From: Choristocarpus tenellus KU-1152 | Taxonomy: Eukaryota > Protista > Phaeophyceae | Assembly: GCA_964200185.2 (NCBI GenBank) | Contig: CAXNAD020000006.1 | Coordinates: 1-59,947, forward strand | Length of the DNA stretch: 59,947 nt | Reading direction: 5' to 3' | Part shown: positions 750 to 59,848 of the stretch, one piece after another | Layout of the letters: each line of letters begins with the position of its first letter | Numbering within the stretch: position 1 is the first letter of the stretch | Translations under genes and position numbers: made by a program | Notes under the pieces: generated by a model | What the model was told of the DNA's origin: nothing | The model's input: the letters and a program-made list of their open reading frames with translations, nothing else | Database searches by the model: none

Positions 750-1598
750 TGCTCTTTTACGGGCAAGATGGGAATGGGAAGTTGGGAAAAGTCACCCTCT
801 ATTCACATCATGGCACTGTGCTTCTTCCTTAAGATTCGTGGAAACCTCTGTTTTGTCAACTCAATTGCGTGTAAAACAAGGTCTGGGTCAAAAGACGCTA
901 GATCCTCCTGGAGATTGTCAACCTCGATCTTCTCCTTTTCTCGAGCTCTTCCTTGTTGTTTTCCTCCCTTAACGTTTGGAGCTCGACATTCGAATGTTAT
1001 GATCTCTTCTTTAGCCACTGCTGGCACCTCAGAGTGTTGACGATACTTTTTGCAGCTTCCTCCTCCAGTTACCTGTCGTTTCTTTACTACATCTTACCTT
1101 TTCTTTACTACATCTTACCTTACCCCTAAAGGTCAATCGTATGGAAGGACCAGGATCGAGTTCTCAGCAGGTTGGCCTCTTTCATCTCTCATCTTCCTTA
1201 TCAACAACATAGTGGCAGAAGCCTCTGATGCGTTTTCTCCCTTCCTCATCACAGTGGCCTCCATCATGGTGGAGGCTTTCGACCTTGCCCTCCACCTCTG
1301 CTTTCACTTCCCTCAATTCGATCTCCATCTCGATCTGTTATTTTGTACCCATGATCTCACCGTCAGCAGTCGCCTGCTTTGCTTCAAGTGCAACAGACAC
1401 AATAGTGGCAGAAACCACCTCAATCATCCGTTGAGCATCTTGAACCACACATGCTTTACCTGTGGCAGTGACACATGCTTTGCGTTTTGCATAGGACATG
1501 TCATGAATGGGGTAAAAAGTTCGATTCAATTTGTATGTATGTATTGTTGTAGAGAGGAGAAATGTTGAGTCAGTCAGGGGACACAAACTTCACAACTG

Positions 1599-16090: not shown

Positions 16091-18172
16091 ATGACCCCAT
16101 ACTTTGCACCCACCGACCCAGTGTTAAGAGGTCCAGGACCTACCTCGGCCACACTGCAGCAGATGCGTATCAAAAAGCGACGTCTAGGGACCAACCAGAC
16201 GTCCTACCCTGGGGCTGGGACAAAGGCTGACTTGCCAGCGATGGCATGGGAATCTAGCACTGGGAAGCGCAGCTTTCGGGGGGCATCAGAGGACTTGGAG
16301 AAGTCAGAAAACCCTCAAAGCAAGTGGGAAGTAGAGGGTTCAGAGGACGTCCAAAGTTCAAGCATTAGTCCAGCGCCTTTACCTGAAACACTGCTCTTCC
16401 AACCTTACAGTTCAGATCCACTCCCAACCGTCGACCTCACAAAATGGCAGAATCGCCTTGGGGTTTCGACAGCCCATGATATACTTCAGCGGAACGCTAG
16501 GTTCAGTGGGTTAATTCTTCGTGAGATACGGAAAGATGCCCCACAAGTTTGCAAGTTTATAAAGTTGCACTTCGGAAATATCGTTGTTGAGTTGGACGTT
16601 TCCCTTTCCAAAATGATCGATGACAATTGCCTCTCAATTTTGTCGACTTGTGAAACTATGAGGCGGCTCAATGTGTCGGGGTGCCCAAACGTGACAGACG
16701 CAGGAGTGAAGAGTGTGGCACGTAAGAAGGCTACAGCTCTTCAAGGACTAGATGTATCTAATTGCCAACGAGTGACGGATGATAGTGTGGAAGTACTAGC
16801 CAGGTGCTGTCCTAGCTTATGTTCCCTTATCCTCTCGGGCTGTCCAAAGGTGAGGGACCGATCCCTCTTTGCAATGAGTGCCTTGCATGGACTACAAAAC
16901 ATTGGATTGGCTGGCTGCAATGAGATCACTGACAAGGCTGCCCGTCAGCTCCTGACAAACCTCACACAGCTCAAGTCTCTCAATATTAATGGGTGCACAA
17001 GCCTCACCAATGAGGGGTTGCACTACATGTACAGGACAGATGTGCCGTGGGGAGTGAAGCGCCACCAGGGCTGTGCACAGCTCACAGTTCTACAAATATC
17101 AGATAATGGACATGTATCTGATGAGCTCGTGGCTGTGCTTACGTCAGTCTGTCCACTCATCTCCTGCCTAGAGCTGGTGAACTGCCCCCTCTTGGGTGGG
17201 GAGGGGGCAATGGGAAAGATGGGTGGTCTCACGCATCTCACATGCCTAGTGCTGAAGGGACTACGGCGAGTGAACGATTATGGAGTAGAAGAGTTCTTTG
17301 CTAGTTGCCCACGAAGATCCCTCACTTACCTCGACCTTCAGAGATGCACCAGGGTGGCTGATGGGGCGCTGAAGTTTATTGCAAAATATGCAAGAAATCT
17401 TCGGGAGTTGCGACTGGATTGTTGCATTAGCGTGACAGATCGGGGCCTCGCATCCCTGTCCAAGGGCTGCACTCTGCTGCACACACTGCAGGCAACACAT
17501 TTGGGGATGATCACCGATATTGGAGTACAGTTGATTTCTCGTAAATGTACGAGTATTACTGACCTTGATATTAGTTACTGCATTCGACTCAGTGGTGGTA
17601 TCATTTCAGTCCTTTGTAAGTTGCACACCCTTGAGAACCTTGGGGTGTGTGGCTGCCCCGGTATTGATAATGCATCACTGACAGATATGAAGCTCAGTCA
17701 ACTTAAGTGCCTTCGCATTGCTGACAACCCACAACTTTGTGATCCTGGCATTAGGGACGCTGTTGCTCGAAACATTTTACTGGTTTCACTTGATTTATCC
17801 AACTGCACAGGCACAACTTCAGCCGGCTTAGCTGACATACTCAAGTCCCTCCCAGAAATCACTCATGTAGACCTTACCGGTTGTACCTCAGTGGGACCTT
17901 CAGAACTACTGGCATTGGCTCATACTTTTCCAATCTCTAGCCTCTGCCTGACGCCAGCTTGCCTCGATGTAGATGGCTTTCACGGCCTACACTGTGCAGG
18001 TGATAATAGAGATGAACGGCATCAACAGGGAATCCTAAAGCAGAGCATACGAGAGAAGAGGGCAGCGATAATGGTGCAGCAGGTATATCGAAGGTATCAG
18101 TGTGAGAATGAAAACATGGAAAAGGAATACAAATTACATATGGAATTGATGCGAGCAGCTATGACAATCCAG
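16091..18172 (+). CDS. Exon 1: cysteine-containing (FBXL/AMN1-type) LRR array plus IQ motif
   Basis: 694 open codons; many LxxLxLxxCxx(V/I)TD repeats; [12 protein letters not shown]; donor CAG|GTGTGA. No F-box motif recognised. Confidence 0.93.
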
Positions 18173-21100
18173 GTGTGAAAAATTTCTATCGGGCTCTTGG
18201 AGAAATTGATTGTATTTGAAGTGCTCGGTATATATCTCAATTCTTCTGTGTGCCATACTTTCAAGCATTGCCTGATTGGTTTACCAACAGTATCTGGACA
18301 GAGTTTTTCTTGGTTTATTTTCACTGCTTTCAACTTGAATGTTTGATGATTCATCTACACACACACAGAATGCTCTGTCCTAGATACCAAGTGAAAAGGT
18401 GGATAGGTAAATAAGATGTGAAATACCCCAACATGGGAATATGTAAGTAAATTTACTCACACATATATGACAGTCCGAGTGAATCCTTGTGGACAATCTT
18501 CCCTCATAGCAATCAGTTTCATACCCCTGCTAATGTATCTCCTATACCAACTTCCACCACCTGGCTCAGTCAACATGTCCTCTTCTCTCATTCAAGCAGC
18601 AACATATTGGTTTATTGATGGAAATTCTATGGTCTATTTGTAAGCTTTGCTGGCTTAGTTTAATAATATTGCTGTGAGCATGTTGTGGTACGCTAAGTCG
18701 CACTGCTTGAATAGTTGATGTAGTGCTTTGTAGCTAGAACCATCATCAGTTGCTGCATGCTTGGAGTATAATTAAAAAAACTTTGTTTTGGTGCCCTATT
18801 CAATAAAAAAAATCCAAGATTAAAAAAAATGATCCTCTTTCAATTCTGCTGATATGACCATCTGCACCAGGCACAGGTGTAAAAATAGACCCCTTTCTCA
18901 CACCATGGTGATATAACATTGTGAAATATGTCATCTACTTAGGGACTTGTGATGAGGTGTGTTGCCTCCCGGAGGCTTCACTATCTAGAAATGCGTAGAC
19001 CACGCCTCCTGCTGAGCCTCAGCAAATGGCGCAAAAGGACGATTGAGGCCAATATCTGGGACAAGGCCTGTCGGCATAGTGACCGCACTACGGCAGTCTG
19101 TGCTATTCGTGACTGGAGGTTGAACACAGCTAAAGAAATGATAGAATCAAGTGAGCTTGGTGAAAAAGCTGTGGTGTTCTTCGAGCACCACCTGGTTTCT
19201 TCATGCCTCAGAGCTTGGAAGAGATACTTGGAACCCACGAAAATGATAGAAGCAACAGGGCAGGCCAAGGCAGAAGCCTGGCGGAGGGAGCATTTGAGGG
19301 CTTCACTATTTCATCTCTGGAAAGGCAATACAAAGGAAACAAAGCAACGGCGAGAAGCTTCCATACGTGCCGTGGTATTTCAACTCCCACTTCATTATGA
19401 GAATTCAATGCGACAGCAAGTAGCATCAAGGCGGGCAATCAGATACCATGCAAGACACGTCAAGGCACATGCTTGGGAGGCATTTTTAAGTCTTAATATA
19501 GAGCTGGCAGACCTGCACAAGCGCATGAAGGTTGGTCTGACTAATTGAATTGACCTTTTGAACAACAGTGCAATTCACCTCCTCAGGAATGCCTAGATCG
19601 CAAACTAAGGAAACACCCTTTTTAATCTTTTGTGGATCACCAATAATGGAGAACATTTCTGCAGTAGTCTAATACAAGTGGTTTAATGTATATTGACTTT
19701 CTCACCACAGAAAAGAGGGGCACCTTTTGGAAAATGAGGTGGGTAGGAGATGTGAGTTGGGAAAGGGGAGTGATGGTACTAGCCACCCAGGCCTGCTGGC
19801 CTTAAACTGGTCGAAATAAATGACCAGGTTTAGTACCAATTACTATTGTCCATAAATTCAACCAACACCTTGAAACTAAAACTACACCCAAACCACATTC
19901 AATTCCATAATAAAGCATACATGATTCAGTATGTGGAGAGCAAAAGCAGGAATTAATCCAAGACAGTTGATAAAGAACAGAAGCTTATGAAGACACTCAC
20001 AAATCCTCAGCATTATAACTCTGGCTTCAGATGTCACCTTTGCCGGTGATTTCATCCTTCAAACTCAAGTTCCTCAATAAACCCCCATGATTCTCTGTCA
20101 GCAATACAAGGTGTGGCATCGACCTCGCTTACTTCAGCGGACCCTTTGCCAGTTGAAAGATGCTACAGTTACCAGCAAGTGGTGTAGGGATGCCAAATGT
20201 AGAGCAGATGTGTTTGCAAGGTCAGGCAAAAAGCGTCGAGTCATCCAGAAGCTTCATGGATTGGCTACAAGTAGAGTGACTCAGCGCACTTCAATGGCCA
20301 TGGCACTAGCATTTGCAAAAGGGAGACCTCTAAGTTGTGGCTTGAGTTGCCTTCGCAATCATCCAGGAGAGAAAAGGGTAAGCATTCTATTAATACTAGA
20401 AATTTACTCTGAAATGTACGATTTATTCCAAAGTAGAATACCAACCCTTCCAAGTTTTGATGATTTGTTCAGTCATTGTGAGGAACTGCTTTACATGCTT
20501 TAAAGCATTCCAGAGCATGAAAAAACAAACGAGCATTAATAGTTGTGATCCAAACTAAAAGAAAAAGCTATGATACCATGATGGGTAAAATTTCTGATTC
20601 AGGTAGTGGGTTGGATTGAGAATAGTTAAACAGAAAAAAGGCTAAAATAATGAGAACAGATAGATTGCTTCAATTCAAAGTCACATTATTGTTCATTTCT
20701 TGGGAGGAAGTCCCTCTCTGTGTTTTTGGCAACACTGCCAGTAGGTCAGTAGCTAGAGAGGGTGGTGTGCGCTTGAAGTCAGAGAAAATAAACCTATGAG
20801 AACAGAAATTGCGAGGTGGAGATGAGGTTTGTTTTCTGCCTCTACTGTAGGATGTGCCCATGTCTACCAAGAACTTTGCAAAATTTATGATCCACATGCT
20901 GTGGTACTACTATTTTCAGATATTCAACTACTGTGAACTTTGAGATGTTAGTTTGTGAATGTGTGGAGCTCTATACAATGAATCCCACTATCCATGCACA
21001 AGCATTTCCTCCTCAAGCAAGTCAGGAAACATGCCTACTACTATCAATTTGGACACAGTTGACTACACAATAGGATTGATCATGATAGACATGACAAATA

Positions 21101-24100
21101 ACTTGCAGCAGTCTTGAACGGGGAATGTCGTTTGAGCAGGACTAGACACACAATTTTGAGTCTAATTGCTCTTGCTCTCCTTCCTTTTAGTACCTAGCTA
21201 AATGTATCTTTATTCTGAGGTTTTGTAGGAATCCTGAAACCCAAACTACACATTCTGATACATGCTACATAGCAGAGCTGTTCTTGGCAAGGACTTGAGC
21301 CCGTGTGCTTCATTGAAAGCACACTGTCTAAAAAAACAACAATCTTGGTTGTCTCACAACTATTGGAAGCCTTTTTTGTACATTAGTTGTTGAGGACAAG
21401 CTGCTTGAAACCCCTTCACGCCTTCTGCTTCACTCACAAAATCACCCATCTACAAAACACAGTTTCCTTAGTGTCAAATATTTCCAACCCCTAATGTGAG
21501 CCACTGTTAACAGCATGTACTCTGGTCATTCCTACTTCAGGTTATCAAGAGGATGCTACAGATTTGGATGGGAGAAGGTGTGAGATGGAGGATCCATAGG
21601 CTCAAGGCAAAAGGAATTGATGCAATGGAATTCTACATGAGGGAAAAGATCAGAGTGGGTTAGACTATTACACTGTGCTATGCAATTTACTCATGATATG
21701 TGCTCCGGTGGGGTAGACATCACTTCATCACTTGATCATTTCTACTGGGGTTACTTTAAACAGTAATACAGTAGAGAGTACTGCAAATTCTAGTGCTCTC
21801 TTGCAACCTTGAGTTAACAACCAGAGCTACCCTAAAAAGAACAGTTGGGTAGGACAATGCCAACCTAATTCTACATAAAGGGGAACAATTGAAGGGAGAC
21901 TCTGATTTGGAGCATTGAATATTGATTTCCCCTCTCAAGATGTATAGGATATTTGACTCTTAACTCCATACCTGTTTTTTTTTTATGTCAGAACAAACAC
22001 CAGCCATTTTCATCTCAACCCTTCACCAGGCTCCCTAGCCCAAGTACAGCACGAGAATCCCTAACTAATCTTTTGAAGTATCTCTTGTGCATCGACCCCC
22101 CAAAGGGTCCTCCTACCAAAGGGTCATCCTAGCCAGTACATCCCCATTCTGTTGTATTTATTCTGAGTACAGCGATGCAACGAGAGGATCTTGTTCATGC
22201 TCACCATTTAAGCAGAGTCTCTCAACTACTTAGCCTTCACCTCCTAACCCATTGCCAGGTCAAAGATATGAGTGCCAAGGCGATTATTATGTCCCTTCAT
22301 CACAGAAATGCTGCATGTTTCATGGCTTGGAAGCTACACCATTGCACGATAAAAAGTGCGATTGCTGCGTGTTATCAGAGAAGGCATAGGCATTTGCTTA
22401 GAAGGTCAGTTGTATGATTAAACATACTGACCCCAGATTGCACCAAGTGTCCTTTAAACTCCTGCTGCAAATTGAAGGTTGAGTAGTTTACCCACCTAAT
22501 AGGCAGGCACACAGAACTCTTGTCTCCTTTATTCATGGAATCCAACACACAAGTCAGTAAGTTGTTGAGTATGGTATACCATGGTTTGCATTTGATTATT
22601 CTGATAGGAGCAAATATGTATCGCAGCTTTGCAGTATTGGTCGATTATTCAATATCATTAGTGCCTTGTGTGAAACACTCTACTTTTTTTTCTACTTTCT
22701 TTGACCATTGGCTGGCTCAATAAAAGAAAATCAGAGTGGACATACCCCTTGGTGGGTTCAGAGAGAGCAACTTATGGAATGTGCACTATTTAATTTTTGG
22801 AAAACTTCTTGCTCTTGTCCCTTTACTCCTTGGACACAATTGCATACAATTTGTAAGAAACATACGAGCATAGCAATTCCTGATGAAAGTCTCCAGAAAC
22901 CATGTCCAGTAGTTCTACCATGACCTTGAGTTAAAACCCTCACATACCTGCTTATACAGAACATATTGCTTAGAGCCAGCTTATCCTTTGGTAGTTTGGT
23001 CCTTTCCCCACACCATTGTACTTTGTTGCCACTAGCCTTGATTTACATTGAAGTTCCTGCCATTGACTGAGCTAATGTTGTGGTCTATTTCCTTGATTTC
23101 ACTCCAGAACATTTCTTACGTGGACTGCATTCCATGGCAAGCTGGATCAAGGCACTGATGACCTCCAGAGTGACCTAGTCTCCATGAAAGAGGCAAGCTA
23201 TAGGCAACTTGAAGCCATGCAGCATATCTTCCATTCCTTGTTGTACCTACACCATATTGATAAGGCACCTAGTTGGCTAGCCACTCTTGTCCTAGATGCA
23301 CCACCCCCTCAAATCTCCCTTGTACATGTTCCCTTGATCTCACTGTCAGTCTTGTGTATTCCTGGTGTTGCCTTGTGTTCAGTAACATCCTGCACCCTCC
23401 CCATATGCTCTTTGCATAATTTGATCACTGGTACAATTCTGGTACAGACCAATGAGAGCCCAAGCATGGAGAGGGAGATGCAAGAGGGAAAAGTCGAGGA
23501 AGGACAGGACAAGATATACCTTCATGAGGAGGACCATTCAATCAAGGTATTGATAGCCACATTCTCCAGAGTAGTGTTGCTTTGCTCTATTGTAACCAAC
23601 CCGTACACTCTAAGTACTCAAGAGGAGTATTCCTATTGGTATTGAAATTCACTCTCAATAATTTTTTGCCCATCACATGAAAGTTACACACTGGAATATT
23701 CACTGTGCTGATCTTTTCATTGCCACGTTGAATTGTCACAAAATATTAACTAAATATAACGTCAAAGGCTTCTTGTTTGTTTTGTGATGTGTCCCTGGGG
23801 CTCTTGTTGAGAAGGTTGCAAGGTGGAGACAACTCTCACTATTGGTGGGGAGGGGGCAGCCATGTGGGGTTATGCTGTGGCAGTGGGGAAGAGGGTTGGT
23901 CAGGATCAAGGCTCAGGATGGGTGAAGAAAATTTCACACATAACAGCACACTTCTAAGTCTCCTCTTTCTGTTTTTATTGTTGAGGACTATGACATTGAA
24001 CAAAACAACTCCAGAGCATAGCATTCCTGTTTCATGACAAGGTGATTATTTTAGCTAAGGACCTGCTGCGCACCACTCTTGTCTTTGCTCATGGTAGGCT

Positions 24101-27100
24101 GGTAAACAGCAATCTACGGAGCAAGAAGGGTTGCAGGACGGAATTCTTGATGGGAATTCCAGTTCAGCAATACTTGTGGAAGCGACTGAAATGTTCCCCT
24201 TAGAGTATATAGCAGCAGTAGCATGTGTGCAGACAGTTTGGCGGGGATGGGTGGCACGCAAGGACTATGGTGAAAAACTGATCTTACAAGAGTGGGCAGC
24301 AGTGAAAATTCAATCTCTATTCAGGGCTCGGATTGCACGGCGAATTATGTCACAAAAAATCAGGTCAGTGTTGATGCTGAGCATAACATGTATTTTTATT
24401 GTTCGGGGCACATTATTCTTGACCCAAGTACCACACCCAGCATCAAGAAAAATGTGTAACGGTGAACTCAAGTTTGCAATTTTTAAGTGGACAGAAAAGA
24501 GATTAGGTACATGCCCGAAAGACAGGGTAACTGGCCCTTGTCTAAGGAGCTGATGCACCGATAAATCTGAGATTAACCTTTGTGTTCCCTACCATGAAAA
24601 CCACATTTGCCTCCTTTTCTGTCTAACCCTAACCCTACCTAATTGAGAGGTAAACTCTGGTTCTAATTGCTACACTAGGCACAAAATAATTCGTCAGATT
24701 GTTAAGGAGGAACAAGCAAATGAAGCAATGGCATGCTCAGACTCTGAGAGTCATCTCCTCCGAGTATATATTAAGGGTCTTGATACTCTAAGCCGTCTGG
24801 TGCTTGGGTACAAGGGTCGAAAGATCGCTCGGGCCAGGAAAAAAGAATTGCACCTGGAAAAGGTGATGAATCTCTTCTTTAACTTTAATCAACTGAACAA
24901 AGTTTACATCAACTTCGTCATCAATCCCCATCATTCACTTGCTTCAATCAGCATATGGAGTGGTGTAGGAGATGTTCAAATCTTCTGGGTGCTGAACAAA
25001 ATGAGAGTAAAACAGTTTGGGTGGCAGTCATTGTTGGAGTGCCCTGCTGTTTAAAGCCAGGCCACTAGACATGTCATACAACTTTCTCCTTGTGTTTCAG
25101 AGTACAGGTACAGACAGTCCTTGCACATACTCACAACAAACCTGAGACAGTAGATTTCTCCTCTACTACTAACCAAAATTATACAGAGCTTCAAACTTGA
25201 TAAGGATAGAACAAAATATCTGAAATGTGATGTCATTGACGATCATTTTATGTTCAACCTTTAATTCGTTGTCACTATGCACTGATATGCTGTACCTTGA
25301 CCTCACTTGGCTCAGGCCACACAGAGGATGCATGAAAATGAGATAGCTTTGAACAAGTACCAAGAAAAACAAAGGCGGCTTGAGCTCTTAAGGAACAACC
25401 TTGAGAGAACGGTCACCATAATTCAGGTGGGGCAGTCAGAACTAACTCACTTTGTGAAATTTTTGCTTCAACGAGAACGCTGAATTTGCCATCAATCTCT
25501 ATTCTTTGAACAAGAGTTGTGTATGCTTTTCCCATTTGGTGAGTGTCTGCAGTAAGGACTTCAGAAGGCTCTGTAACCAACATCAGACCAAACCCAATCT
25601 ATGAAAACACAGGTCTCTCTTGTACAAGTAGTGGATAAGTAGTACTAAATCTATCTTGTTTTCATACCACCACTAATACTACCAGTAGTAGTAGTAACCA
25701 GTAGTAGTAGAAACATCTCCACTCGGATCTGCTGATACTGTGACCTGCTTCCTTTTGTTTCGCACAGGCAGCAGTGCGAGGCATGATCGCAAGAATACAG
25801 GTGAGGGAACTAAGGGAGGACATTAGGCAAAACCTTGCAGCCATCCGCATCCAGTGCATGGTAAGGTTCCGTGGAGCCAGGCTGGAGGCTGGGGCACGCA
25901 ACCGACATCGAGGTGAGAAAGAAAGTGTGTAGTGTTCATGAAGTTTACTAAAATTGAATTTGATCAAGTTTACTTTATTTGAGGAAGTTCGAATGAAAGC
26001 ATTTTTACATGCCAATAGTATCTTAATGCAAACTATCTGTCTTGCGCTATTCAACCTATGGGATGTAACACTTAACTCACTTAACTAACTCAAGACAGAG
26101 AGGAAGATACCTCTAGAAACCAACCTTCTACAACCATGCTGCTCATGGGATGTGCATTGACTATGTATCCAGGGTTAGTCAATCACCATCTCCATCTGTA
26201 GACAACCTTCTAGTATGTTCACTCTCTCCTTCGCTTTCACTCTTTCAACAAATTCTTGAAAACACACATGTGTTTGTTCACAGAACGCCTCAAGTATCTG
26301 GGCCGCAGTCGAAAGATGCAAGGGTGCATTTTGCGACTGGCTGGACTCAGTCAGCGCAAAACCCAACGGCCTGTAATACGCCTCTTCCAGAGGTTTGGTG
26401 TGAATCTCATGTCCTTCACAATTGATGTGAAAAGACAATGGGCGGATATAACAAGGGACAAGGAACTTGCACGGGCTGAATTTTTGATGTGTCAGGATGC
26501 TTGCAGGCAAGATGATAAAAGTTTGCTGCTGCAGCCCTCTCTCCCCCAACATTCTGTAAGAGATACACAGAGTAATTTAATCCCTTGGTCCTAGTAAACT
26601 CAGTCTGATTCATTTTTTTTCAGAATCTGAACCTTCTCAATCCGCTGTTGTGGCTGTGCAGCAAAGAGCCTTAAAATATCATATAACAAAGACTGTACTG
26701 TGTGTGAGAAATTTGTGGTTCTGTTCCTTGGCTTGTTGATTAAATAGGCTTATGGTACAGTGCATGGCAAGACAATCTCAATATCAATTATATCAATGAT
26801 GGCCTTCAAAATTACTTTGGAGTATTATACTGTATTAATGTTAATTGCACAATCCCACTATTCCACTCTCATCTTCTTTTCACAGTTCTTTAAGATGGTT
26901 TTGAGTAGATCTCCCCCCTCCATGTGCTTCCATCCAGCTCCTTCTGACACCCTGGCTTGATTGCACTTCTTCCTTCATTCCACAGAAGAGGGGGGCGTGA
27001 TACCCATCTCATGGTGGAGGTTTTCAAGTCCTTGCAGATTTCAGCTCTTGAACTGAAGTGTGTAAAACGTGGTGATGTAGTGAAAATAGTGCAGGTTGAG

Positions 27101-48100: not shown

Positions 48101-51100
48101 TTACATACTATATGATGTATGCTGTACTGTAGAGTAAGTGCATATTTCAGCCAGTAATATCGACAACTTCGGAAACACCATGAGGGTTGATGAAAGAAGC
48201 CTGTGTGCCTTCAAGGTATTTTTCTTTCTTCAAAACTCTTTTTTTTATGTGGTCAATTTCTAACGGATAAATGACTGATAAACAAGGGCATCCCTGTGTA
48301 CAAATAAAAAAAAATGTTCCTATGAGTTTGGGTCATTTCTGTTCTGACAGACCGTTCCTGTACGCAGGACATGACGGCATTGTTGACATTTTTTAAGGTT
48401 TGCATTGCTTATATCTAGAACATAAGCTGTGATGTGATCTACTACTCCTTGTGTCTAAACCAATTCTTCCTTGCATGTCACATTTCAACGTAAATGTAGA
48501 GTAGGAACTGATGTAGTCAGTACTCACCCTATGCAAGGGAAAAAACATCCGACTCTATTATTGAGTGAATATTCATTTTACTTAGAATTTCTCCAACTCA
48601 TTTGTTAGGATCTGAGAGTATGACAAAATTTGTTTTGGGACAGAGTAGACTCCACTTGCTACAGTGAGTGGTAAACTTTTCATGTAGGATATATTGATTG
48701 AGGTGATGATACTCAAGGAGTGAGACTTTGTCCAATCACTGAAGTGCAGTTGTCCACCAATCACTGAAGTGCATTTGTCCACAGTGAACTGAACTTATGA
48801 TACCTATTTCCACCTCTTGACGTTTCATAGAGCTCCATTTTGCGCAGAAATGTTGATACATACTCTGTATATATGTGTGAGTTCGTATGTGTGTGTAATG
48901 TACTGTACTTGTTCTGCATTACGTGAAAATTTTGATACAGACCTCGTGTGCCTTGTTTAAGTTTGCACAGGAATGGGAGGCAAGGCAGAAGGCATTTAAT
49001 AATCCATGGGCAGGTCAAGTACTCTCTTTTTTTGTGGAATGTGTAGGAATGTATATTCACTCCCCTGTAAATCCATTGCTTAAGGCAGACTGATGCTAAC
49101 CTGAGTCTGTCTCTAGAAAATCAGATTAGCAATGCACTAAGTGTTCTGTTTGTGAGGTGTGCAACCAAGAAGCCCAAACCCTGTTGCAACTAGGATTAAA
49201 AAAAAATGAAACCGAGCTATTATGTATCCAACATTCATACTTCAAAAGTATAATGCACATGCAGGAAAGTTAATCTGTAATGCGATTACTGCAATTGAGT
49301 GCTGATTGGCCTCTACCTAAAGAAACATCAAAATTCATAGTCCTGAATTCATGCCTAACGTTAGCCAAATTGACTTCAACTGGTGAAGGAGACATTTCGA
49401 TTAGTTTGAGCTGATGTTCAATTTTGGTAGCATAGCGTTTTTCAGTAAACCCAGTTTCCATTGAAATTTCAGGTTTATGAAGGAGAGTATGTGGATGAGG
49501 AGATGCATGGTATTGGAGAATATTGTTCTGCAGACCACACTGTATACAGTGGAGAATGGCATCGAGGACAGCGGCAGGGATTTGGGATACTAGAGTCTGC
49601 TGATGGTGCAGTCTATGAGGGTGAGACACAAATATTAGTTAGTGTTAATTGAAGGAAATGTATTTGTGTCTATCAAAATATAGTGCCATTTTATCCCCCT
49701 TTTCTTATACACTCAATATATCTCTACTACAGTTTCAATAACCACGAAAAAACTTTGCACTGCGGGATGTGCTACAGCTGACTGGCACATTGAATACAAC
49801 TGCAGGTGACTTTGACCACAATGTTATTCATGGTGATGGACTCTGGAGGTGGCCAGATGGGTCTACATATGTGGGACAGTCAAAGTATGGCAAAAGAGAA
49901 GGAAGAGGACTATATGTGACTAAGATGAGGGTGAGACACTACAAGTTGTGATGACCAACGACATTGGATAGGTTTTATTACCTTGGTTATTTCAGAGCTG
50001 TGAAAAAAATGTACACATTTGACGATTGGCATCAGTAGACTACAAAAATTATCTAGTACTTGGAGAATAGTTGTCCAACAACTTATTATTTTATTGTTTT
50101 CAAATGGTACACAAGAGGGAAAGCACATGTGACCCCTGAATATGACCAGTACATAATGAGCAGCATGTATCATAAATAGCCAGAGTCTGGTCTTCTGAAC
50201 CTGGCTATGTTTTTGATAAATAGTTGTGCTATTTTGAACTATAGATTGAACTTTTCTCAAAACACTTATTTGGGACTTCTCTCACACAACAATTACTGTG
50301 GATTGTGAGACTATAGCAGAAAGGACCATACACATGGCCACCCAATGAAAGAAATACCTACTCTGGAGAATCTTGTTGATGAACAGCATATTTATTATTA
50401 TTTTTTGTTGCAGTCTATGAAGGAAAATCTAAGTTTTTCCTTTTGTGCGTGCTTTGTTAAGGTTTACCACACCAGTAGAGACAGACTTACATATCTGTAT
50501 CTGTGTTTGGAACAGGATTTTGACTCTTTCAGCAGACTCTTGAGTGTAATCAATGTTCAAAATAAGTTATGGCAGTCAAATAGTAAGCGGTTCCCACTTT
50601 GCTTTCTAGTTCGAAGCCTTTGTTAAAGCCCCCTCAGTACTCACACACATATATAACCCTTTTCAACACTCAACCTTCTGGTCTGAAATGCCCGCACCTT
50701 GGTACCAATAGTGCGATACTCTGAACTCAACTTTTGTTTTGGCGTTAGGACGCATATTATGGTACCTACAAAAACAATAAACCTCACGGTACTGGGCTAT
50801 TTAAGTACTGTGACGGGTCCTCCTACAGTGGGGATTTTGACATGGGACTGAGACATGGGCTTGGCACATATGAAGATAGCAAAGGGGTGTGGAGTATTGG
50901 CTCTTGGAGGGGTGACAAGAAGCATGGGACTTTTGAGGTGGGGAAAATGAATCAACTCAATGAACAATGTTCATGGTACACATTTGGTCTATGATGACAC
51001 AAATATCCTGGTGTTGTGTTGTTGATGTGTAGCAGCAGCAGGATTAGACACATTTCATCACAGGAAAAATGCAATGGGGATTCCTAGCATTTTCTCTTTT

Positions 51101-54100
51101 GGTGACCAAGTTGCAGCGGATGGTCACAACCTGGACAGCAGCACCTGACAAATCTAACTCTGCTTGCTCTATCTCCCTCAGTGTCAGTCCAATCACTCAT
51201 CAGGTAAACAACACTTGAACAAAAATGTGTTATAATTGGTATGTTGATGCCAAATAACTGCTGTGAACACACCCCCAGCTACAATTCTTTATCTCTTTGT
51301 ACTCCTTGAAGTTTTGAGCATCATCTTCATTGTTGCTGTCGCTTGCTGAGAAAAGGAATGTCACCTCCATCCATGTCCGCCCCAGATCTGCTAGGCATAT
51401 GTTTAACCAAAGGTGTGCTTGCAACCACTGCGGTGTTTCAAACACTATGTGGAATTGATGTTGCTGATTGCTGTGCAGGAACACACACCTGTGTATATCC
51501 CTGAACTGCAGGAAAGTCAAGATGAGATCAAGACAGGACGGTGGGAAGAAGGACTATTTGTGGAGTGGCTACTACCCCCAGTATTCCCATATGCAACCAA
51601 GCAGTTCTACGAGTTGTTTGAGACTGAAGAGAATGAATATGATGGGGTGTATGCCATGTTGGTGAGATGTGGAAAAGGAGGGATCCTCCACAATTTCTCC
51701 ATAGATCTGTTTGTTTGGGTTCACATTCTGGTGAGCTTTATTGCTGTCTTGTAGGAATTACATTATTTACACCTTTGAAAGAACTTAACAAGTAGACCTA
51801 GCACTTGCTCTGTCTCCTTGACCCACCCATCATCCAGTTCGAGGCAGCAATTAATTATACCTAGACTGGAAGGCCACTCACATTACAGCAATTAATCAAG
51901 ACAAACCACATATGACAAGCTCAACCGTACTGTAGCCTGCCCAGCCTGTTAACATTATTTACACAAACCTATTCAAAGCACAGTCAACAACTCTGTATAA
52001 CCCATTGTGGTTTCATCGGGTTGAAATGTGTGTCAAAGCAAATTCCCAGGTACATGTCCCTTGTTCACATGAACAATTAACACATAAAAGGATATACAAA
52101 AAGTTATTTCATATTCTGATTTGGGCCTAGAGTTAGTAGTAGCCTGAACCATGCACTGACTCTTGTAGGCAGGAGTAGAGTTTTATCCACTTGCACCTCC
52201 CTGATGATGAGCCAACAAGCTGAGGTGATTTGGGAGAGGTTGCATTTGAAATGCATTGCAATGATTCCATGAATAGCATATACCCTGGGAGTATATATGT
52301 ACTATAGTAGTTCACAAAAAAAATGTGACCCAAAATGCCAACAATCACTTTACAGCACCTTCATGTCATGGGTATGGGTACCAGATGGAAAACCAATTTT
52401 GTAGTGTAGTAGCACTTGTTGCACAATCAAACTAATAAAGCCAACTGTGAGTATCAGTGGTTGCTATTGAGTATGGGAATATACTCTAGATGATGTGACG
52501 ACTCAAGTGGTATCCTCTTGTGTATTTATACCTACACAATATTATTTATTGCCTTGAGTGCTGTCTTTTCCCCATCAACCACCACGACATTAGTGCCCCA
52601 ATTATTGATGGTCTCTTCACAGTGCACCTTGTATAATTAGAGACATCATTATCTGGAAATATATCTTATTCACTTGGACTATTGCTGGTCACTCCTACAC
52701 CTAACCTGGGTTTAAGGTTTGTGTCGCTAGGTCACATAGCCAAATTTCACAATATAGTGCTGGTGGTTGTGATTGCTGCTGATTGATCCATGCTGTACAT
52801 CTCAACAAATTCAGCTGAAGTCACATAAATTCCATCAACAGATATTGAAAAATCCTGTGACGGTTTTCAAAGATCCAAGCCCTAGCATTATCACCCCGTA
52901 ACTTTAATATCTTCTCATTGGTATCTGCAAATAGGTGGCCAAGAAGCTGCCCTTCTTGCCAAGGGGTGTTAATCCTTCCAATCCACGTGTGGCTGCGGTG
53001 GTTCGTCGCATAGCTATGGAGGCTGGGGAGCTATGTGCAATTGACACTATAAATGAAACAACTCAAAATGTAGGCACACTAAAGCAAGCTGGCGGGGAGG
53101 ATGCTTGAAAAACTCGACCCTGGATCTCTTTCCCATTGTGAAAAAAACTTTGCCAATTTTTTCTTGACTTGATGAGAGTTCTTTTTCTGCCAACATTAAC
53201 TCCAAGAGAGTCTCAAACCTAGGCACGTTAAACTTAGTAAAGACTTTCTGAAGATGAACATATGATTTAATCAAGTGGAAAGTGTCAAAGTTTCAAATTT
53301 TATCTTTCAATAAAGATTGTAGCACTTTACAAAAGTAGAACTTGGGTAGAACTAATGGAAAATATAATAGAATAATAAAAGTGATAATTTTTTTTTGTGA
53401 ATTATCTCCTAATCGGCTTAAAATATTATAATTACACTCAGATATGTCAATAGATGACTCTACCAATAAACTGTACATCATAATGTCTCTGACGTAAAGT
53501 TCTTTTTGCCACTTACTTCCCTTGCCACAGCAAAAGATTCATAACTGATATCATCTAAAGTTTGTCCACCTTTTAGCTTTTGATTAAGATACGCAGTTTT
53601 GTTTTTTGGTTCCTCATCGGTTAAGTTTTGCATAGTTTGTTAGGAGACTTTATCTTGGTTATACTTCTCAGCTTCACGCAACTAGTTAAGACTAAAACAT
53701 AAAATACTCATTACCAACTAAACAATTTCTGTAAGTCATGTGGCACTAGACAGTGGGTATGGTATGATGGATAAAATAAAAAAGTCTTAAACGATTGATA
53801 AATTGCATCTAAGAATGCAGAAATTAATTTAGGAAATGTTTTTCCTCGAGAAAGTCTAAAATCATTTAGAGTGATGGTATAAAAATAGGTATTCATATGT
53901 GAAGATATACGAACATATTAACGTTTTGTGATGACATATCTCTCTAGGTACAAAGTGCAAAGATGATTCATGATAAGGCATTGTCAAGACTTCAGTCTGC
54001 CCAATCTCTTGAAAAGATGGACCTTTGCAACCTGGAGAGTCAGAGGGCTGCTACCAATGTTCTAGTTAGGAAGCTCAGTCTATTGGAGGTATGATGACAA

Positions 54101-57100
54101 AAGCATGTACCTGGTCATTCTTATTTTGTGGTTATGTCTTCAATAGTAATGCACTGAAGGCACCTGGATTTTTTTCGATGATACTTTGTTTCTACTTACA
54201 CTGGCATTGCCTATGAGTAGAACCCATATGGTTGCCATGATGTTACTCAACCATCCCCTCTATATGATATCAATGCCATTTCTCTGCATTGTTCAAGTAT
54301 GCCCCTCTGCTTCAAGTACCTTACTACCTCACCCACAATTGATTTATGTGTCTCCCTATGATGATGGTCTATCTTGATATGTGACAGGGGAACAAGGAAA
54401 AGCTTGAAGCTGAGGTGGAGCAAGCCTATGTTGATGATCGCTCTCAGACCCGTGCCGCCTTCTTATCGGCGGTCAAGGTCCTTAAAGGGCTTAGTTCAAC
54501 AGACTGGTTCATTTTGCGTAACTACAATCAGCCTCCACCAACACTTACTACCCTGATGTCTGCTGTGTGCACTCTCATGATGGTCAAGGACAACTGGAAA
54601 AGTGCCCGAAACTTGCTTGCGACCTCTGTTCAGAACATGCAGGTAATCAATCTAAGGGTTATATGAACAAGAAGTTTCTTATTGCTGAACTCCAGCTTTT
54701 TAACAAACCAGTGCATATCAGGATATTGAGAAAGATGTGAAGCCTTTTACGTTTTTTGCAACTGATATATACTACGCCTGAGTCAAATGGTGGTTGAAAT
54801 TGACCAATGAAATCAGATCATGTGGTCAAAGCCTTCTAGACAGATCAAGCATAAAACCCCAATTTTAACTTTGATCCTTGTTTGACTTGCCTGCATTGGA
54901 ATTTTCACCACTTTCAAATATAAGGACGGGGATGAGGAGGCTCTACATTGCTCCTACGATTGTAAGCTGATCTACCGCCTTGAAAATGAGTTCAACCCCT
55001 ACAGTCGCTGTGATGCAGCGGAACTCATGCTCAAGCTAAGCATGTTTGTGATTGATCCACACTTCAAAAGTGACAGCTTCTTCCTGCGCACTTTTGGAAA
55101 AGCTGTTGGCCCACTGGTGGATGTTGTGGGCTCAGCCTATAACTACATTCTCAAGGCTGCGGAGTTGAAGCCTCGTGTGGTGATGACACAAGGATTGGCA
55201 TGGAAATAATCGCATTTTCATTAAAAATCTTTTGGTTAGATTGAGCTTAGTAGTATACTTGGATCTTGCTTGCTGAATCTGCATGCCATGGTCCAATGTT
55301 TATTTTTATCATGTGATGAAATACTACAATTCATTTTCTATATATGATGTGCATACCACTAAATTTACAGATATTTCTCTGTTGCCTGCCTGTGTCTGTT
55401 GTTGTGGATCAGAGCAAAGACTCTGTGAAGACTGAGAACAATCTTAGCTTGAGCTCTAGGACTTTCAAAAGCTTCATGCTAGTTACTGCTTAGACTCAAC
55501 AGATTCTCGCATCCTTAGATATGCTGACTTGATATCCTTGCCATGGCTTTGCTGTTTTCTGGGCACACCGCATGATATACCCGAATTGGTGGGGCAGCTG
55601 GCTGTCACTGGCCTTGCCAACAACATCAAACATACAAAAAATAGAATAGAACAGGAGAGGGAGATTGAGACTAGGTTTGAAAGGGCAACAGCAGAAAAAA
55701 TTTCAAGGGCCAATGCAGCAAGGCAGGACGAGGACAAAACAAGGGTGCATCTAGAGAAGCTTGAAGCACTCCTTGCAGAAGCCAAGGGACTTGTATCTGT
55801 CTATGTGGTGCGTGGTGTATGAACATAGCATTGGCCAAATTCGATGTATCAGTAGAGAGTAGGTTGTGCATACCCCTAGCTGGCTGTATGTTTAGAAATG
55901 CAATGTGCTTGACTGGCATCCAGGAAATATATCTTTTCTCCCTCCCATCCCTTCCTGTCCCTATTTAATATATTCTCAGAGTACCTGCAAATTTGGGTAG
56001 TTCCACATTTCCAAAAGTCACATTCTAGTCCATTCAAATTTGCAGTTTACCTATCAAAATCCAAGCTTGCATTTAATGATTTGATATGCCGTCAAAGTAC
56101 AGAGTAGCACCTCTACAACAACAAAAAAATCCCTTGTTACTCTTGCAAGCCTCCGAGAGGTGATCCTGATACTTACGAGGAGTTGGAGAATAACCTCAAC
56201 CGGGATCGCACTGAGATTGAGGTCGTCTTGGAGCTCATGTTCGATCAGCTTTCCTCAAATCTCATCAACTTTCACACAGAGGTTCCAGAGTTCAAGGCAA
56301 GCTGATCTGTTTTTGGCAGTGAGGGGCTATCCCTTTCTCAATGATACATGTTGATTGTACAATTGCATTGACTTTTTAATACAAATCTTCAACTGAGGAA
56401 TTGTCATCCTTTACTGAATGAAGACACTACAGAAAAATGTTCGTTGAATGCTAACCCATACTTTGTATTTTCTTGTATCCCACTAAGGGGACCAATCCTT
56501 CCGTCAAATTTACAGTGACTCAAGGGTGATCTCATGTTACCCCTTTTGTATGTAATTTGAGCTCAATTTTTCTTGATATGACAAAACAGAAGATCTAAAA
56601 AGTTTTCTTTCCATCCCTTACTTGAGTATCCACACATCTGCCTTAACCTTTCAGCAAGAAAAACTCACCATCTTTTCTCATTCCTATGTTTGTTGCATTA
56701 TCACTCCACCTGTTTTCAGCTGCAGGAATATATTTGCAGTCAGATAGAGGAGGCTCTAGCCAGCATGATCAAACGTGGGGAATACAACTATGTGGCTGGT
56801 AAAGCTGTATGCCGTGACAGTATGAGGGTAGGTTGCAAATCTTCATATTCAGTCTTCTCATATTACTACTCTAATTATCAGATTCACCCACAAATAAACA
56901 TGCGGGGTAGGAACGTAGGTACACCTCAAATGGCTGTAGTCCTGTTCATGATGACCTCATCTTTGGTATTCTGGACTTTGTACAGAGAGAGGTGGGGGAG
57001 GATACAGGGCAATTGGTGGAGTACATAACGAAGTCAATTCAAAAATGTTGACAAGAGGCAATTGTTGATCTTTCTCACCCACCACATTGTTGTTCAACTC

Positions 57101-59848
57101 CACCTGACAAAACAATTTGCATTGAACATAAACTGGTGTGTAGGATGTCTGTGCTAGTTTGACACCCTTTCAAAAAATATACTCCGGACTAACCCTAACC
57201 CTTATCTATTCTCCCCCACCTCATTATGTGACGTCTCCTAAGGTGGAGGAGGCCAAGAGGGATATACTGAAAGGCTGTGTGTACCAGATAAATGAGTGCT
57301 TACATAAGTCGCCCCCTTCAACATGTACCTGGATTAGCCTTGATGGTCAGCAGGTTGTATCTGCGCACATTAACGAGGTGACTCAAGAGTTGCTAGAACA
57401 CTTTATTGAAGCCAATCACACCATCCTTTGTCAATCCTTCATGGTGTCAGAGACTTTCACCCATATCTTGAGTCTTTTCTAGGTTACATAATTGACGTGA
57501 GATGTCCAAGTCAACCTTTCACCTTTGCTCCAAGTGGAACCCCCTTCCAAATGATGTGGTCCTTGATTGAGGCAGGTTCTGGACAAGGAGTGGGATGCAT
57601 ACTTGTCCCGGAATGCCCACGATGTGGCAGTTTCTAATTGGGAGCTAGCCTTCACAGGGGAAGGAGAGGCCGCCTACCAAGCATTATTGTCAATGACCAA
57701 TGATCTTGTTACAGGGGATAGGAAGGCGGAGGCAACTCTATGGCTTGATAGGTGAGGCTGTGACTGTCAGTTTTTATCATGACATTCCAAAGATAAGCTT
57801 CTTCGACATGAAAGAGGAGCGGCATAGGAGGAAGATGAACTGGAGGGAAACAAAAAATGGAGGATTTTTTTTTTCTATGCAGTCTATGTCACAATTTTAT
57901 TTTAGGAAAAACAAAAACCCTTGCAGCAGCAAGGGATATAACTGTCTTGTGCATTGACTCTTGTTCCTATGGCACCATTGTAGCAACCCAGATCAAGCAG
58001 CGGAGATGAGGTGGATGCTGTCACAGCAATTTGCAGATGGGTGGCCAGAAGATACTGCTCGGAGGTGCCTACAGGCAAGAAAACAAATTCTTGGGAGCAG
58101 TGCAAGATTAAGGACTGGGATTTGGCTTAACCTGTTGTGGCCACTGAAGTTTGATTAAACTTTATTCTCTCACCTTGAAGTTGATTAACATCCGGTGAAA
58201 GTTGGGCACTACAGTCAGTGTTTTGGCATAGGGGAGGTTAGCATACTTGCAACTCTGAAAGTACTGCAGAATATATCAACCATACACTGTGGCTGGCAGG
58301 TGTCCAGTAGCTACATGCACCAGGAGCTCCAGCTGCTATGTCAAAGCATCAGAAAACGATAGACTTGAGGAACTCAACAAATTTCAATGTCACCTTCCAC
58401 ACATTTTTTGGTCAGTTTGTGACATGTTTTTAGTTTTGAACCTGGAAAACATAGTGTAATATATCTGAAGAGGAAGTGTAATGGGCTCTCAGTAGTTATG
58501 ATCCTTGACCGTTGTGAAGTGAGTTGCTACAATCCTATAATGTCAGACTGGGACAAATTTGTGAAATTACATTGAAACAAAATATGTCGCTTGATAATGC
58601 TGCTCAAAACCTTACAACCCCCCCCAAAAAAGATGACGAAAACTACAGCTAAATGGTTTGATTTTGACAGGTGACCAAATATTTTCTGTTGGTTGGGTGA
58701 ATTAGGTTGGATGGCTTCCAAGCATTTGGTATCTGAGTGTGAAGTCGAATATTAGGGCAATGCCAATAGTCAATTGGTTGCATAGAGTTCCTTAAATATA
58801 TGTGTGTGCAAGTGTGGAAAGGTGCCAGCGTAATTTCTTGTGAAAAATAGTCTTTTTTAGTTTAAATAATGTTCAATCTTTTTTCACGCTTGAGCCAACA
58901 TAGTCCCTACCACCTACTAGATTTCTGTGTCTCTGCATTCTGGTGCCAGTTGGATGGACACTAATTCCAGGTGACATCAGCAATGACAAACTCCCTCTTC
59001 CATTACCTTCAGTCAAGGATACCACTATGATAGAAAATTGGCATGCAGAATATTGTATTGTAAGATTGACAAATATTAAGATCTTGGCCTTGTTTTGGTA
59101 TTAGGGTTACACTTCTTGCTCCACACAACCCGGCCATTTTTTTTTTAGTCAAGACAGACAACCCTAGACTCAACTGTAAATTTAAATTATCCACTTTTTT
59201 GTCATGATTGTTATATTGTATATTCAATCAAGTTGAAAGCAGAACGGTTTATTTGTCCCTCTGTATCTGGTAGAAATTAATAACAGTATAACCCTTGATT
59301 ATGTGCCACATACCTCTATGTTATATAACCATGGGCAGGTACTAGAGGGTAAGGAGCGAGATTACTCTCCTGACATGGTACTTCAAGCTGCCATGTGGCA
59401 AAATGTTCATTCAGAGGAGATAAGAGAAATCAGCAACATTCTCTGTGAAGAGAAAGCTAGCAAGTTCATGACAATGTGGAGTTCAGAAGAGGAGGTGAGA
59501 AAAGATCAGTGAAGCGCGATGTGGTAGAATGAGACCTTTCACACAGAAAATACAGGTGTGCTAGAGGAGGGTGTGACATTTCAGAATTTTTAGGAACTTC
59601 CCTCTCACAACTAATCAACAAAAAATCAAGGTGAAGACAAGAATTTGCATGGAAATATATTCACTCCCAAATTGCATTATCCTTGTTTGTAATGATATGC
59701 AGGCAGCGCAAAAAGTTATTGAAATTCGAGAGAGCAATGACGTAATCCAAAAGTCATATGCTGAGGCATGGGCCTCATTCCACGTAATTGCCATGACCAA
59801 AGTGGAGGCAGCAATTGCTGCAAGAAGGGCTGATATGTTCGAGGAAAG
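16091..59848 (+). CDS. Giant multi-exon, multi-domain protein (LRR, Sfi1-like, IQ, C2, discoidin-like, Ig-like, MORN, dynein-stalk-like); 3' end lies beyond the window
   Basis: Hand-chained exons with matching phase: 16091-18172, 18943-19530, 20102-20377, 21541-21654, 22259-22404, 23108-23192, 23448-23546, 24098-24363, 24679-24862, 25316-25426, 25768-25912, 26284-26506, 26986-27172, 27562-27666, 27972-28108, 28325-28442, 28808-28971, 29285-29372, 29470-29542, 29649-29812(or 29731), 30121-30303, 30546-30700, 30900-31038, 31549-31639, 32223-32500, 33722-33885, 34211-34367, 34635-34772, 34971-35044, 35677-35841, 38112-38280, ~38525-38647, 38949-39095, 40862-40949, 41618-41736, 42132-42265, 43538-43663, 43968-44163, 44835-45005, 45508-45636, 45777-45870, 47127-47222, 47835-47968, 49473-49620, 49806-49930, 50749-50937, 51479-51661, 52935-~53069, 53948-54088, 54388-54642, 54925-~55179, 55598-~55792, 56150-56296, 56720-56827, 57243-57443, 57576-57751, 57984-58074, 59339-59494, 59703-59848. 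Several IQ motifs span junctions (e.g. AAMTIQ|GLVMR, TIIQ|AAVRG). A few junctions are unresolved and small exons may be missing. Confidence 0.8.
18943..23192 (+). CDS. Exons encoding Sfi1-like (centrin-binding type) repeats
   Basis: [18 protein letters not shown] and [18 protein letters not shown] fit A-X7-LL-X3-F/L-X2-WK with 34-aa Trp spacing; also AACFMAWK and LLRRTFLTW. Confidence 0.72.
24098..28442 (+). CDS. Exons encoding IQ calmodulin-binding motifs and a KOW-like motif
   Basis: [57 protein letters not shown]; [27 protein letters not shown] (26986-27172). Confidence 0.85.
30060..30084 (+). repeat. Short interstitial telomere-like tract (CCCTAA)n; others at 24623, 34463 and 57189
   Basis: AACCCTAACCCTAGCCCTAACCCTA. 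Confidence 0.7.
30121..32260 (+). CDS. Exons encoding one MORN-like repeat and a C2 domain
   Basis: YHGAW...PHGEGYAEF; [81 protein letters not shown]. Confidence 0.9.
31231..31483. repeat. Intronic minisatellite, 11 x 23 bp
   Basis: Unit (C/A)TGAACTAATCTTTACACATTGT, head to tail, no spacers. Confidence 0.97.
32261..38280 (+). CDS. Exons encoding a second IQ-motif cluster
   Basis: [79 protein letters not shown]. Confidence 0.87.
38525..41736 (+). CDS. Exons encoding an F5/8 type C (discoidin / galactose-binding-like) domain
   Basis: [79 protein letters not shown]. Confidence 0.72.
39166..39318. repeat. Degenerate ~30-40-bp tandem repeat: CAGACAAGAT anchor plus (TAT/TAC)n tail
   Basis: Five anchors (cagacaagat, cagacaatat, cagataagat, caaacaagat, cagacaagat) separated by variable triplet runs. 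Confidence 0.8.
42132..45636 (+). CDS. Exons encoding an Ig-like domain with inserted CxxC..CxxC and coiled coil
   Basis: [28 protein letters not shown], then CIHC..CGNC and a coiled coil, then [13 protein letters not shown]. Confidence 0.7.
45777..51661 (+). CDS. Exons encoding a MORN repeat array
   Basis: [86 protein letters not shown]. Confidence 0.92.
46498..46810 (-). mobile_element. Truncated mariner relic (3' end of transposase plus one TIR) in an intron
   Basis: TA|CTCCCCTCTGTCCCATAA Stowaway-type TIR; minus-strand [27 protein letters not shown] aligns with QSLFAVYREVLGSKGDNIFEIPH..CKLP of the 8549-9051 transposase. Confidence 0.78.
53455..53640 (-). pseudogene. secA: secA N-terminal fragment, probably plastid-derived (NUPT), inside an intron
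   Basis: [40 protein letters not shown], one frameshift, then [16 protein letters not shown]; matches the SecA pattern L.DEEL..KT..F...L..G.TLDD...EAFAV.RE...R.LG.RH.DVQLIGG. AT-rich codons. Confidence 0.85.
53948..55792 (+). CDS. Exons encoding coiled coil - dynein-stalk microtubule-binding-like domain - coiled coil
   Basis: [50 protein letters not shown] resembles the dynein heavy-chain stalk head pattern (AL..L...DI.E..SY..PP..V..VM.AVC.LL...W..A..LL); downstream [17 protein letters not shown] resembles L..WV.A...Y..V.P. Confidence 0.65.

Follow-up and report, generated by a model that had tools for sequence, protein, structure and literature searches.

The locus treated here raises two questions: whether a long and unusual string of protein domains is encoded by one gene or by several, and what a protein built in that way might do. 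It lies on contig CAXNAD020000006.1 of the brown alga Choristocarpus tenellus KU-1152 (assembly GCA_964200185.2, forward strand, positions 1 to 59,947; this whole stretch of 59,947 nucleotides is referred to below as the window). A preliminary reading made from the letters alone (hereafter the sequence-only reading) had proposed a giant calcium-regulated centriole/flagellar scaffold on about 59 exons. Comparison with orthologous loci shows one predicted protein-coding gene from 16091 to the contig end, with a product of about 4,000 amino acids (aa). In the order read from the sequence matches, its parts are an FBXL-type LRR solenoid, tryptophan-rich helical repeats, an IQ cluster, a small beta-barrel, a C2 domain, a long IQ array, a discoidin-like domain, an Ig-like domain with a zinc-ribbon and coiled-coil insert, about eight MORN repeats, a dynein-type stalk hairpin and a helical tail. 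The domain string noticed at the outset is real and unusual, and it is conserved in the orthologues. What appears to be new is the use of a dynein stalk in a predicted non-motor scaffold; the component domains were already known.

The multi-exon gene begins on the plus strand at the ATG at 16091, the first of an open reading frame (ORF) of 695 codons, and it is still open at 59848 of 59947, the contig end. Fifty homology-supported exons between 16091 and 55814, picked by homology and not by phase, join into an uninterrupted chain of 3,393–3,458 codons that uses AG acceptors, GT donors and two GC donors. About eight more tail exons, found ab initio and two of them supported by orthologues, extend the chain to 59848, in agreement with the ~59 exons, ~3,700 aa and open end of the sequence-only reading. 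The exact boundaries of several small exons are uncertain. The joined chain served only for counting codons and stops; all searches were performed with single exons or with unspliced orthologue ORFs. Micro-exons of 22–57 nt proposed ab initio, placed wherever the exon finder was unable to use a GC donor, were discarded as spurious; one of them sat inside a high-copy repeat.

The question of one gene or several was decided by comparison with Discosporangium and with five independent eukaryotic loci that are poor in introns and come from metagenomes or Logan assemblies. In these five loci the domains follow one another in the order of the window, on a single strand. The loci and gene model used are as follows:

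L001: uninterrupted ORF of 2,080 aa, corresponding to window 16379–32509
L005: uninterrupted ORF of 2,273 aa, corresponding to window 32216–57743
L002: uninterrupted ORF of 754 aa, corresponding to window 34659–49930
L006–L008: uninterrupted ORF of 2,373 aa, with LRR, IQ, C2 and discoidin on one ORF
L004: coding run of 9.3 kb, with unrelated genes on both sides and a WW domain at the end
P0159 of Discosporangium mesarthrocarpum (sister genus): gene model of 1,245 aa, corresponding to window 34629–55813 with 45–85% identity per exon

Because every junction is bridged by at least one continuous ORF in the orthologues, the locus is read as one gene and not as several, and the single chain first proposed from exon phase is borne out by ORFs that cross all junctions, with some 3,400 codons open. 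An intron of L002 (43 nt, GT-AG, within 2240–2290) lies no more than two codons away from the place of an intron in the brown alga (window 49931–50748), and the L002 ORF breaks near 3500, where the window has a donor at 55180; since both match window positions, some intron positions appear to be common across a large distance.

A different gene end is given in the public record. When exon 1 was taken as query in an exhaustive HMMER search, a protein of 2,317 aa with 100% identity was obtained, CAM9103157.1 (“unnamed protein product, partial”), which by tblastn corresponds to 31 exons from 16376 to 39113; by this comparison the public annotation holds only the first 2,317 residues of the predicted protein. 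That the deposited model ends at an in-frame stop at 39114, and that the public runs with the locus contain DNA only, would fit two or more neighbouring genes, with the LRR, IQ and C2 parts in a first gene that ends at 39113 and the MORN repeats and the stalk in at least one further gene downstream of it. Such a division is very improbable: the uninterrupted ORFs of L002, L005 and L006–L008 and the Discosporangium gene model all cross 39113, the phase is continuous across ~3,400 codons, the stop falls just past a consensus GC donor, and the annotated gene end would divide the discoidin-like domain. The single gene is therefore retained, with the following feature at the point of disagreement:

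39096–40861, plus strand: GC-AG intron, read from the sequence, with donor CAG/GCAAGT and a microsatellite inside

The preceding exon (38949–39095) ends in CAG, and read-through meets an in-frame TAG (39114–39116) 18 nt on; the public model stops at 39113 because this intron was read through. Splicing from 39095 to 40862, a junction that the open chain requires, gives a gapless CPKQ/VRLECCK joint against four orthologues and completes the discoidin-like domain. A second GC-AG intron (43664–43967), with the donor AG/GCAAGT as in the first, sits within the zinc ribbon, and the GC donor at 43664 restores a four-residue spacing that is present in all orthologues. The public gene model ought to be corrected, and other genes in these assemblies may carry the same GC-AG error. 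The microsatellite inside the first of these introns is an A/T-rich trinucleotide repeat at 39117–39351, of which 39170–39245 was skipped as repeat in the read comparison.

It could also be asked whether the locus still functions. An exon-shuffled relic in decay, with its expression lost, would be compatible with public runs that contain DNA only, with the retroelement fragments that fill the upstream 12 kb and with a very high-copy repeat in one intron. We consider decay scarcely credible, given that the ~3,400 codons are free of stops, that the locus is single copy, that identity to Discosporangium is 45–85% exon by exon and that the domain order is kept in distant protists.

The part of the gene that sets it apart lies near its downstream end and is built from these features:

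53948–55814, plus strand: dynein-type stalk, consisting of CC1 (53948–54088 and the start of 54388–54642), a six-helix microtubule-binding domain (54388–54642 and 54925–55179) and CC2 (55598–55814)
51479–53069, plus strand: post-MORN module (with a motif of 12 residues) and stalk base, on exons 51479–51661 and 52935–53069

A dynein heavy chain consists of six AAA+ modules plus a linker, with the stalk placed between AAA4 and AAA5; it is the AAA ring that, by way of the coiled-coil register, determines how strongly the motor binds. To our knowledge, the stalk with its microtubule-binding domain is known only within the dynein motor. A stalk profile (A2, made from two orthologue ORFs and five window exons) was searched against all chain sequences of the PDB. 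It matched almost only dynein heavy chains (best E 6e-9 to 1.7e-7), the best matches being a Leishmania heavy chain, DNAH6 and the DNAH1 stalk crystal construct (DNAH6 and DNAH1 are inner-arm axonemal dyneins). The “PP” of H1 and the proline that opens CC2 align with those of dynein stalks.

The structure of the Discosporangium orthologue was modelled with AlphaFold2 (AF2) on a deeper alignment that included the window exons. The model (predicted local distance difference test score, pLDDT, 89.7; predicted template-modelling score, pTM, 0.70) has the shape of a long helix, a helical head and a second long helix. In a Foldseek search of this model against the PDB, 50 out of the 50 matches listed were dynein stalk or microtubule-binding-domain structures, 8i3j among them (E 8.6e-8; template-modelling (TM) scores 0.60/0.63), with TMq up to 0.73 among the matches listed. 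The ESM Atlas was concordant with a dynein stalk both by language-model features and by shape. An earlier AF2 run with the 402-aa L001 ORF and a shallow alignment (pLDDT 48) was excluded from the fold search.

No AAA or Dynein_heavy match in Pfam was obtained with any orthologue ORF scanned, the PDB alignments to dynein span stalk residues only, and MORN repeats lie directly upstream of the stalk. By profile and modelled fold, the predicted stalk head is a true homologue of the dynein microtubule-binding domain, carried by a protein without the motor, so that the segment first described as dynein-stalk-like has gained both profile and structural evidence. The stalk module is present as a single copy in the genome. 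The post-MORN module before it is 60–78% identical to L001, L002 and P0159 (alignment A1) and gave no family match.

The other parts of the gene, from its start to the contig end, are as follows:

16091–18172, plus strand: exon 1, with the N-terminal region, ~500 aa of FBXL-type (cysteine-containing) LRR and, at its end, the first IQ-like motifs
18943–23348, plus strand: exons 2–6 (18943–19530, 20102–20377, 21541–21654, 22259–22404, 23108–23348), with basic, tryptophan-rich helical repeats (“Sfi1-like”)
24098–25912, plus strand: exons 7–10, first IQ cluster (Pfam IQ E 5.7e-9 and E 0.003), colinear with L001 and L005
26991–27666, plus strand: exons 12–13, small beta-barrel-like module (KOW/SH3-like), conserved in orthologues
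30546–31038, plus strand: exons 20–21 (30546–30700, 30900–31038), C2 domain, in which acidic residues occupy the customary positions of the Ca-binding loops, as read from the sequence
32223–38288, plus strand: exons 23–29, second and larger IQ array, from Pfam IQ matches and pattern count
38949–41736, plus strand: discoidin-like (galactose-binding-like) domain, on exons 38949–39095, 40862–40949 and 41618–41736
42132–45636, plus strand: Ig-like domain, on exons 42132–42265, 43538–43663, 43968–44163, 44835–45005 and 45508–45636
45777–50937, plus strand: MORN repeat array, on exons 45777–45870, 47127–47222, 47835–47968, 49473–49620, 49806–49930 and 50749–50937
56160–59848, plus strand: helical tail exons with uncertain boundaries; the L005 ORF aligns at 57567–57743 and the L001 tail ORF at 59703–59843

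The LRR assignment of the sequence-only reading was confirmed with Pfam in exon 1 (LRR_6, E 7e-16, 57 bits; LRR_4, E 1.4e-11), and the orthologue P0006 matched FBXL2 (6o60_C) among PDB sequences with E 8e-25. Orthologues L003 and L005 align with the window from 16196–16235 onward, and only about 7 cluster representatives out of 1.8 billion align across the whole LRR exon. No F-box family was present in the Pfam results for exon 1 of the window and for five orthologues.

The tryptophan-rich exons 2–6 lie in the annotated model, and L003 is colinear across exons 2–3. They recall Sfi1 by a basic helical region with a tryptophan every ~22–37 residues (with gaps) in a hydrophobic-x-x-W-basic context. 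In the window this motif was observed 7 times with 1.7 expected (P 6e-4); in orthologue P0006 it was found 4 times with 1.6 expected, which is not significant (P 0.07). In contrast to Sfi1 itself, the region had no Sfi1 family match in Pfam at E ≤0.1 and no PDB sequence match at E ≤10. The Sfi1-like segment, and with it the proposed link to centrin, comes from tryptophan periodicity without statistical homology, with an enrichment that is significant in the alga and not in the orthologue, and is not supported statistically.

Pfam IQ matches were obtained in six exons (single-exon scans), with PF00612 scores (cut-off 20.3 bits) of 35.4, 21.2 and 22.5 bits, and exon 23 at the start of the larger array is covered by both the 2,080-aa ORF of L001 and the 2,273-aa ORF of L005. 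By pattern count there are 10 motifs within exons and at least 5 across or touching exon ends, which brings the “more than 12” first counted to at least 15. The exons ending at 18172 and 25426 break off directly behind the letters “IQ” of such a motif, and in several more exons the end lies inside a motif; such exon ends within motifs hint that the IQ arrays may have grown by exon duplication.

For the small barrel-like module, a conserved RGD-V-I-V…CG-TGRV core was found (alignment A5). The KOW label given to it is weakly indicated by this conserved, barrel-like motif; the best PDB sequence match of its profile is sub-threshold (uL24, E 0.28, followed by a designed SH3, to E 0.64), and nothing significant was obtained in Pfam. 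The C2 domain is a full-length PF00168 match across two exons, as had been proposed, divided exactly at profile position 50 (2–50, E 1.3e-6; 50–97, E 3.9e-8). Its halves score 29 and 33.9 bits (cut-off 22), and the corresponding matches in orthologues reach 76 and 60 bits (E 2.4e-21 and E 3.7e-16).

The discoidin-like region is colinear with P0159, L002 and L005. Matches of F5_F8_type_C/NedA-like type recur in the window and in three orthologues and are sub-threshold throughout (E 0.01–0.14); the L006–L008 ORF carries a precomputed “weak” discoidin match (E ≤1e-3), and CBM32 was reached at E 0.028 with a profile against PDB sequences. The earlier assignment gains weak support from this recurrence of matches below threshold. 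The Ig-like domain is interrupted by a CxxC…CxxC zinc ribbon and a coiled coil of ~100 aa. Profile A6, from its N-terminal half only, matched CEA (E 3e-7), the MALT1 Ig (E 7e-6) and titin (E 4e-4) among PDB sequences, which substantiates the Ig-like call; the C-terminal half gave Pfam Ig_2 at E 0.049. Tandem MORN repeats, also named in the sequence-only reading, were found above the PF02493 cut-off of 22.5 bits in three window exons (E 8.7e-11, 9.4e-6 and 7e-13; 41.5, 25.7 and 48.1 bits) and in six stretches of the L001 ORF, and the orthologue MORN repeats matched MORN1, FAP266, RSPH1, RSP1 and RSP10 among PDB sequences.

At the downstream end, the orthologues run ~360 residues past the point aligned with the contig end. 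The missing 3′ continuation of the gene was not found when the whole assembly was searched with the tails of two orthologues. A WW domain terminates some orthologues (L004:19029–19328, Pfam E 6.6e-10, and also the end of L001:19341–21098), and the L005 protein is without one.

As for the surroundings, fragments of retroelements lie in the 12 kb that precede the gene, at 6–1040 (plus), 4943–5254 (plus), 10032–11276 (minus) and 11329–11817 (minus). To judge from their translations only, these comprise two copia-type reverse-transcriptase ORFs in opposite orientations, a gag-like ORF and a gypsy-type reverse-transcriptase fragment. Within the gene, the intronic stretch 43122–43515 has a summed word depth of 10,000–50,000 in DNA contigs, compared with ~24 in other parts; the contigs break at this stretch, which is a repeat of very high copy number.

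What such a protein might do was considered from its parts. The account that we favour, and that we hold to be somewhat more probable than not, is that a single protein of ~4,000 aa acts as a non-motor tether, most likely in the microtubular apparatus of the zoids. The tip of the stalk would bind the microtubule lattice in the manner of a dynein microtubule-binding domain, and would do so statically because there is no AAA ring to shift the register of the coiled coil. From domain knowledge, the IQ motifs may be occupied by calmodulin-like light chains and act as stiff rods that respond to Ca. The C2, MORN and discoidin-like domains would hold membrane or partner proteins, the C2 domain being predicted from its acidic loop residues and from domain knowledge to bind Ca and lipid, and the LRR solenoid may dock a further partner. 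The terms “centriole/flagellar” and “calcium-regulated” in the sequence-only reading are inferences from domain types.

Within the zoid, the site would be the axoneme, the basal bodies or the flagellar roots; this is the weakest step of the account and is weakly indicated. The protein has an axonemal flavour because its stalk is nearest to those of the inner-arm dyneins DNAH6 and DNAH1, its MORN repeats match radial-spoke and other axonemal proteins, and its LRR is of the FBXL type.

Several observations weigh against this account. The only named species among the matches are Choristocarpus and Discosporangium, two Discosporangiales; the other orthologue loci are from protists, with GC contents of 41–55%. 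The locus is present in two public runs, both made up of intron-containing DNA contigs and not of RNA, and these contigs are colinear over window 38000–43900 (5,901 letters) with no splice joints. Among the chains of six axoneme cryo-EM entries (8glv, 8j07, 9e5c, 9y6s, 9fqr and 9ijj; from Chlamydomonas, human, bovine and mouse sperm, Trypanosoma and Leishmania), only domain-level matches and no orthologue were found, and a role in the axonemal core would therefore not be conserved across eukaryotes. Finally, the C2 domain together with the MORN repeats would suit a cortical or membrane-contact role equally well.

On distribution, a word-indexed search with residues 600–2317 of the annotated protein returned only the protein itself and an unrelated C2 protein (sequences of up to 4,055 aa were covered, and full-length models may be missed), and neither the stalk alignment nor a conserved motif in back-translated form gave any match in metagenome scans.

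The same single protein might instead serve outside the flagellum in vegetative cells, either as a cortical or organelle tether from cytoplasmic or spindle microtubules to membranes or as an ASPM-like scaffold at the spindle pole. This is a serious rival, which we regard as possible rather than probable. C2 and MORN are typical membrane-contact modules, and the orthologue matches include MORN1, junctophilin and synaptotagmin; from established knowledge, microtubule binding together with a long IQ array is reminiscent of ASPM, and the solved axonemes gave no orthologue. It has to be set against this that the stalk is closest to axonemal inner-arm dyneins, that MORN, IQ and FBXL-type LRR recur in axonemal complexes (RSP1/10 and DRC6/9/10) and, for the ASPM-like version, that the Pfam results are without a CH or ASH domain.

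Should the tether in the zoid apparatus be correct, the heterokont flagellar apparatus, the protein composition of which is poorly known, would gain a candidate for one of its structural elements. A motor-less stalk protein would add a new kind to the microtubule tethers, and the conservation of the whole hairpin without the ring would amount to a natural experiment on the action of the stalk alone. More speculatively, and as a possible rather than a probable reading, the dynein stalk may be usable as a free-standing, ATP-independent strut, in a calmodulin-regulated link between microtubules or from microtubule to membrane (for example, a nexin-like bridge or a flagellar-root tether); this would have arisen by capture of an inner-arm stalk and would represent an undescribed class of non-motor microtubule-associated proteins, confined to stramenopile-like protists.

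Among known systems, no characterised protein with this architecture was found in the literature or among PDB chain sequences, those of the six axoneme entries included, as the sequence-only reading had supposed, and in the same sources no dynein stalk is described for a protein other than dynein. ASPM/Asp is likewise a giant protein with a long IQ array (predicted to be decorated with calmodulin) and an association with microtubules. ASPM differs in having ASH and CH domains and in being without dynein stalk, LRR, C2 and MORN; no ASPM-specific domains appeared in the Pfam results for the window exons and the orthologues. LRR, IQ and MORN are also building blocks of the nexin-dynein regulatory complex and of radial-spoke heads. 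There they occur in DRC6/FBXL13 (LRR), DRC9/DRC10 (IQ) and RSP1/RSP10/RSPH1 (MORN), small separate proteins for which no orthology to the present one was found beyond the domain level, whereas here these domain types are placed on one chain. With the inner-arm dyneins (DNAH6, DNAH1; 8i3j) the protein shares a complete antiparallel coiled-coil stalk and a six-helix microtubule-binding domain (TM 0.6–0.73). It differs from them in an insert of ~20 residues between H3 and H4, in the position of the stalk between MORN repeats and a helical tail, and in having no AAA+ ring, linker or tail, so that an ATP-driven register shift is impossible.

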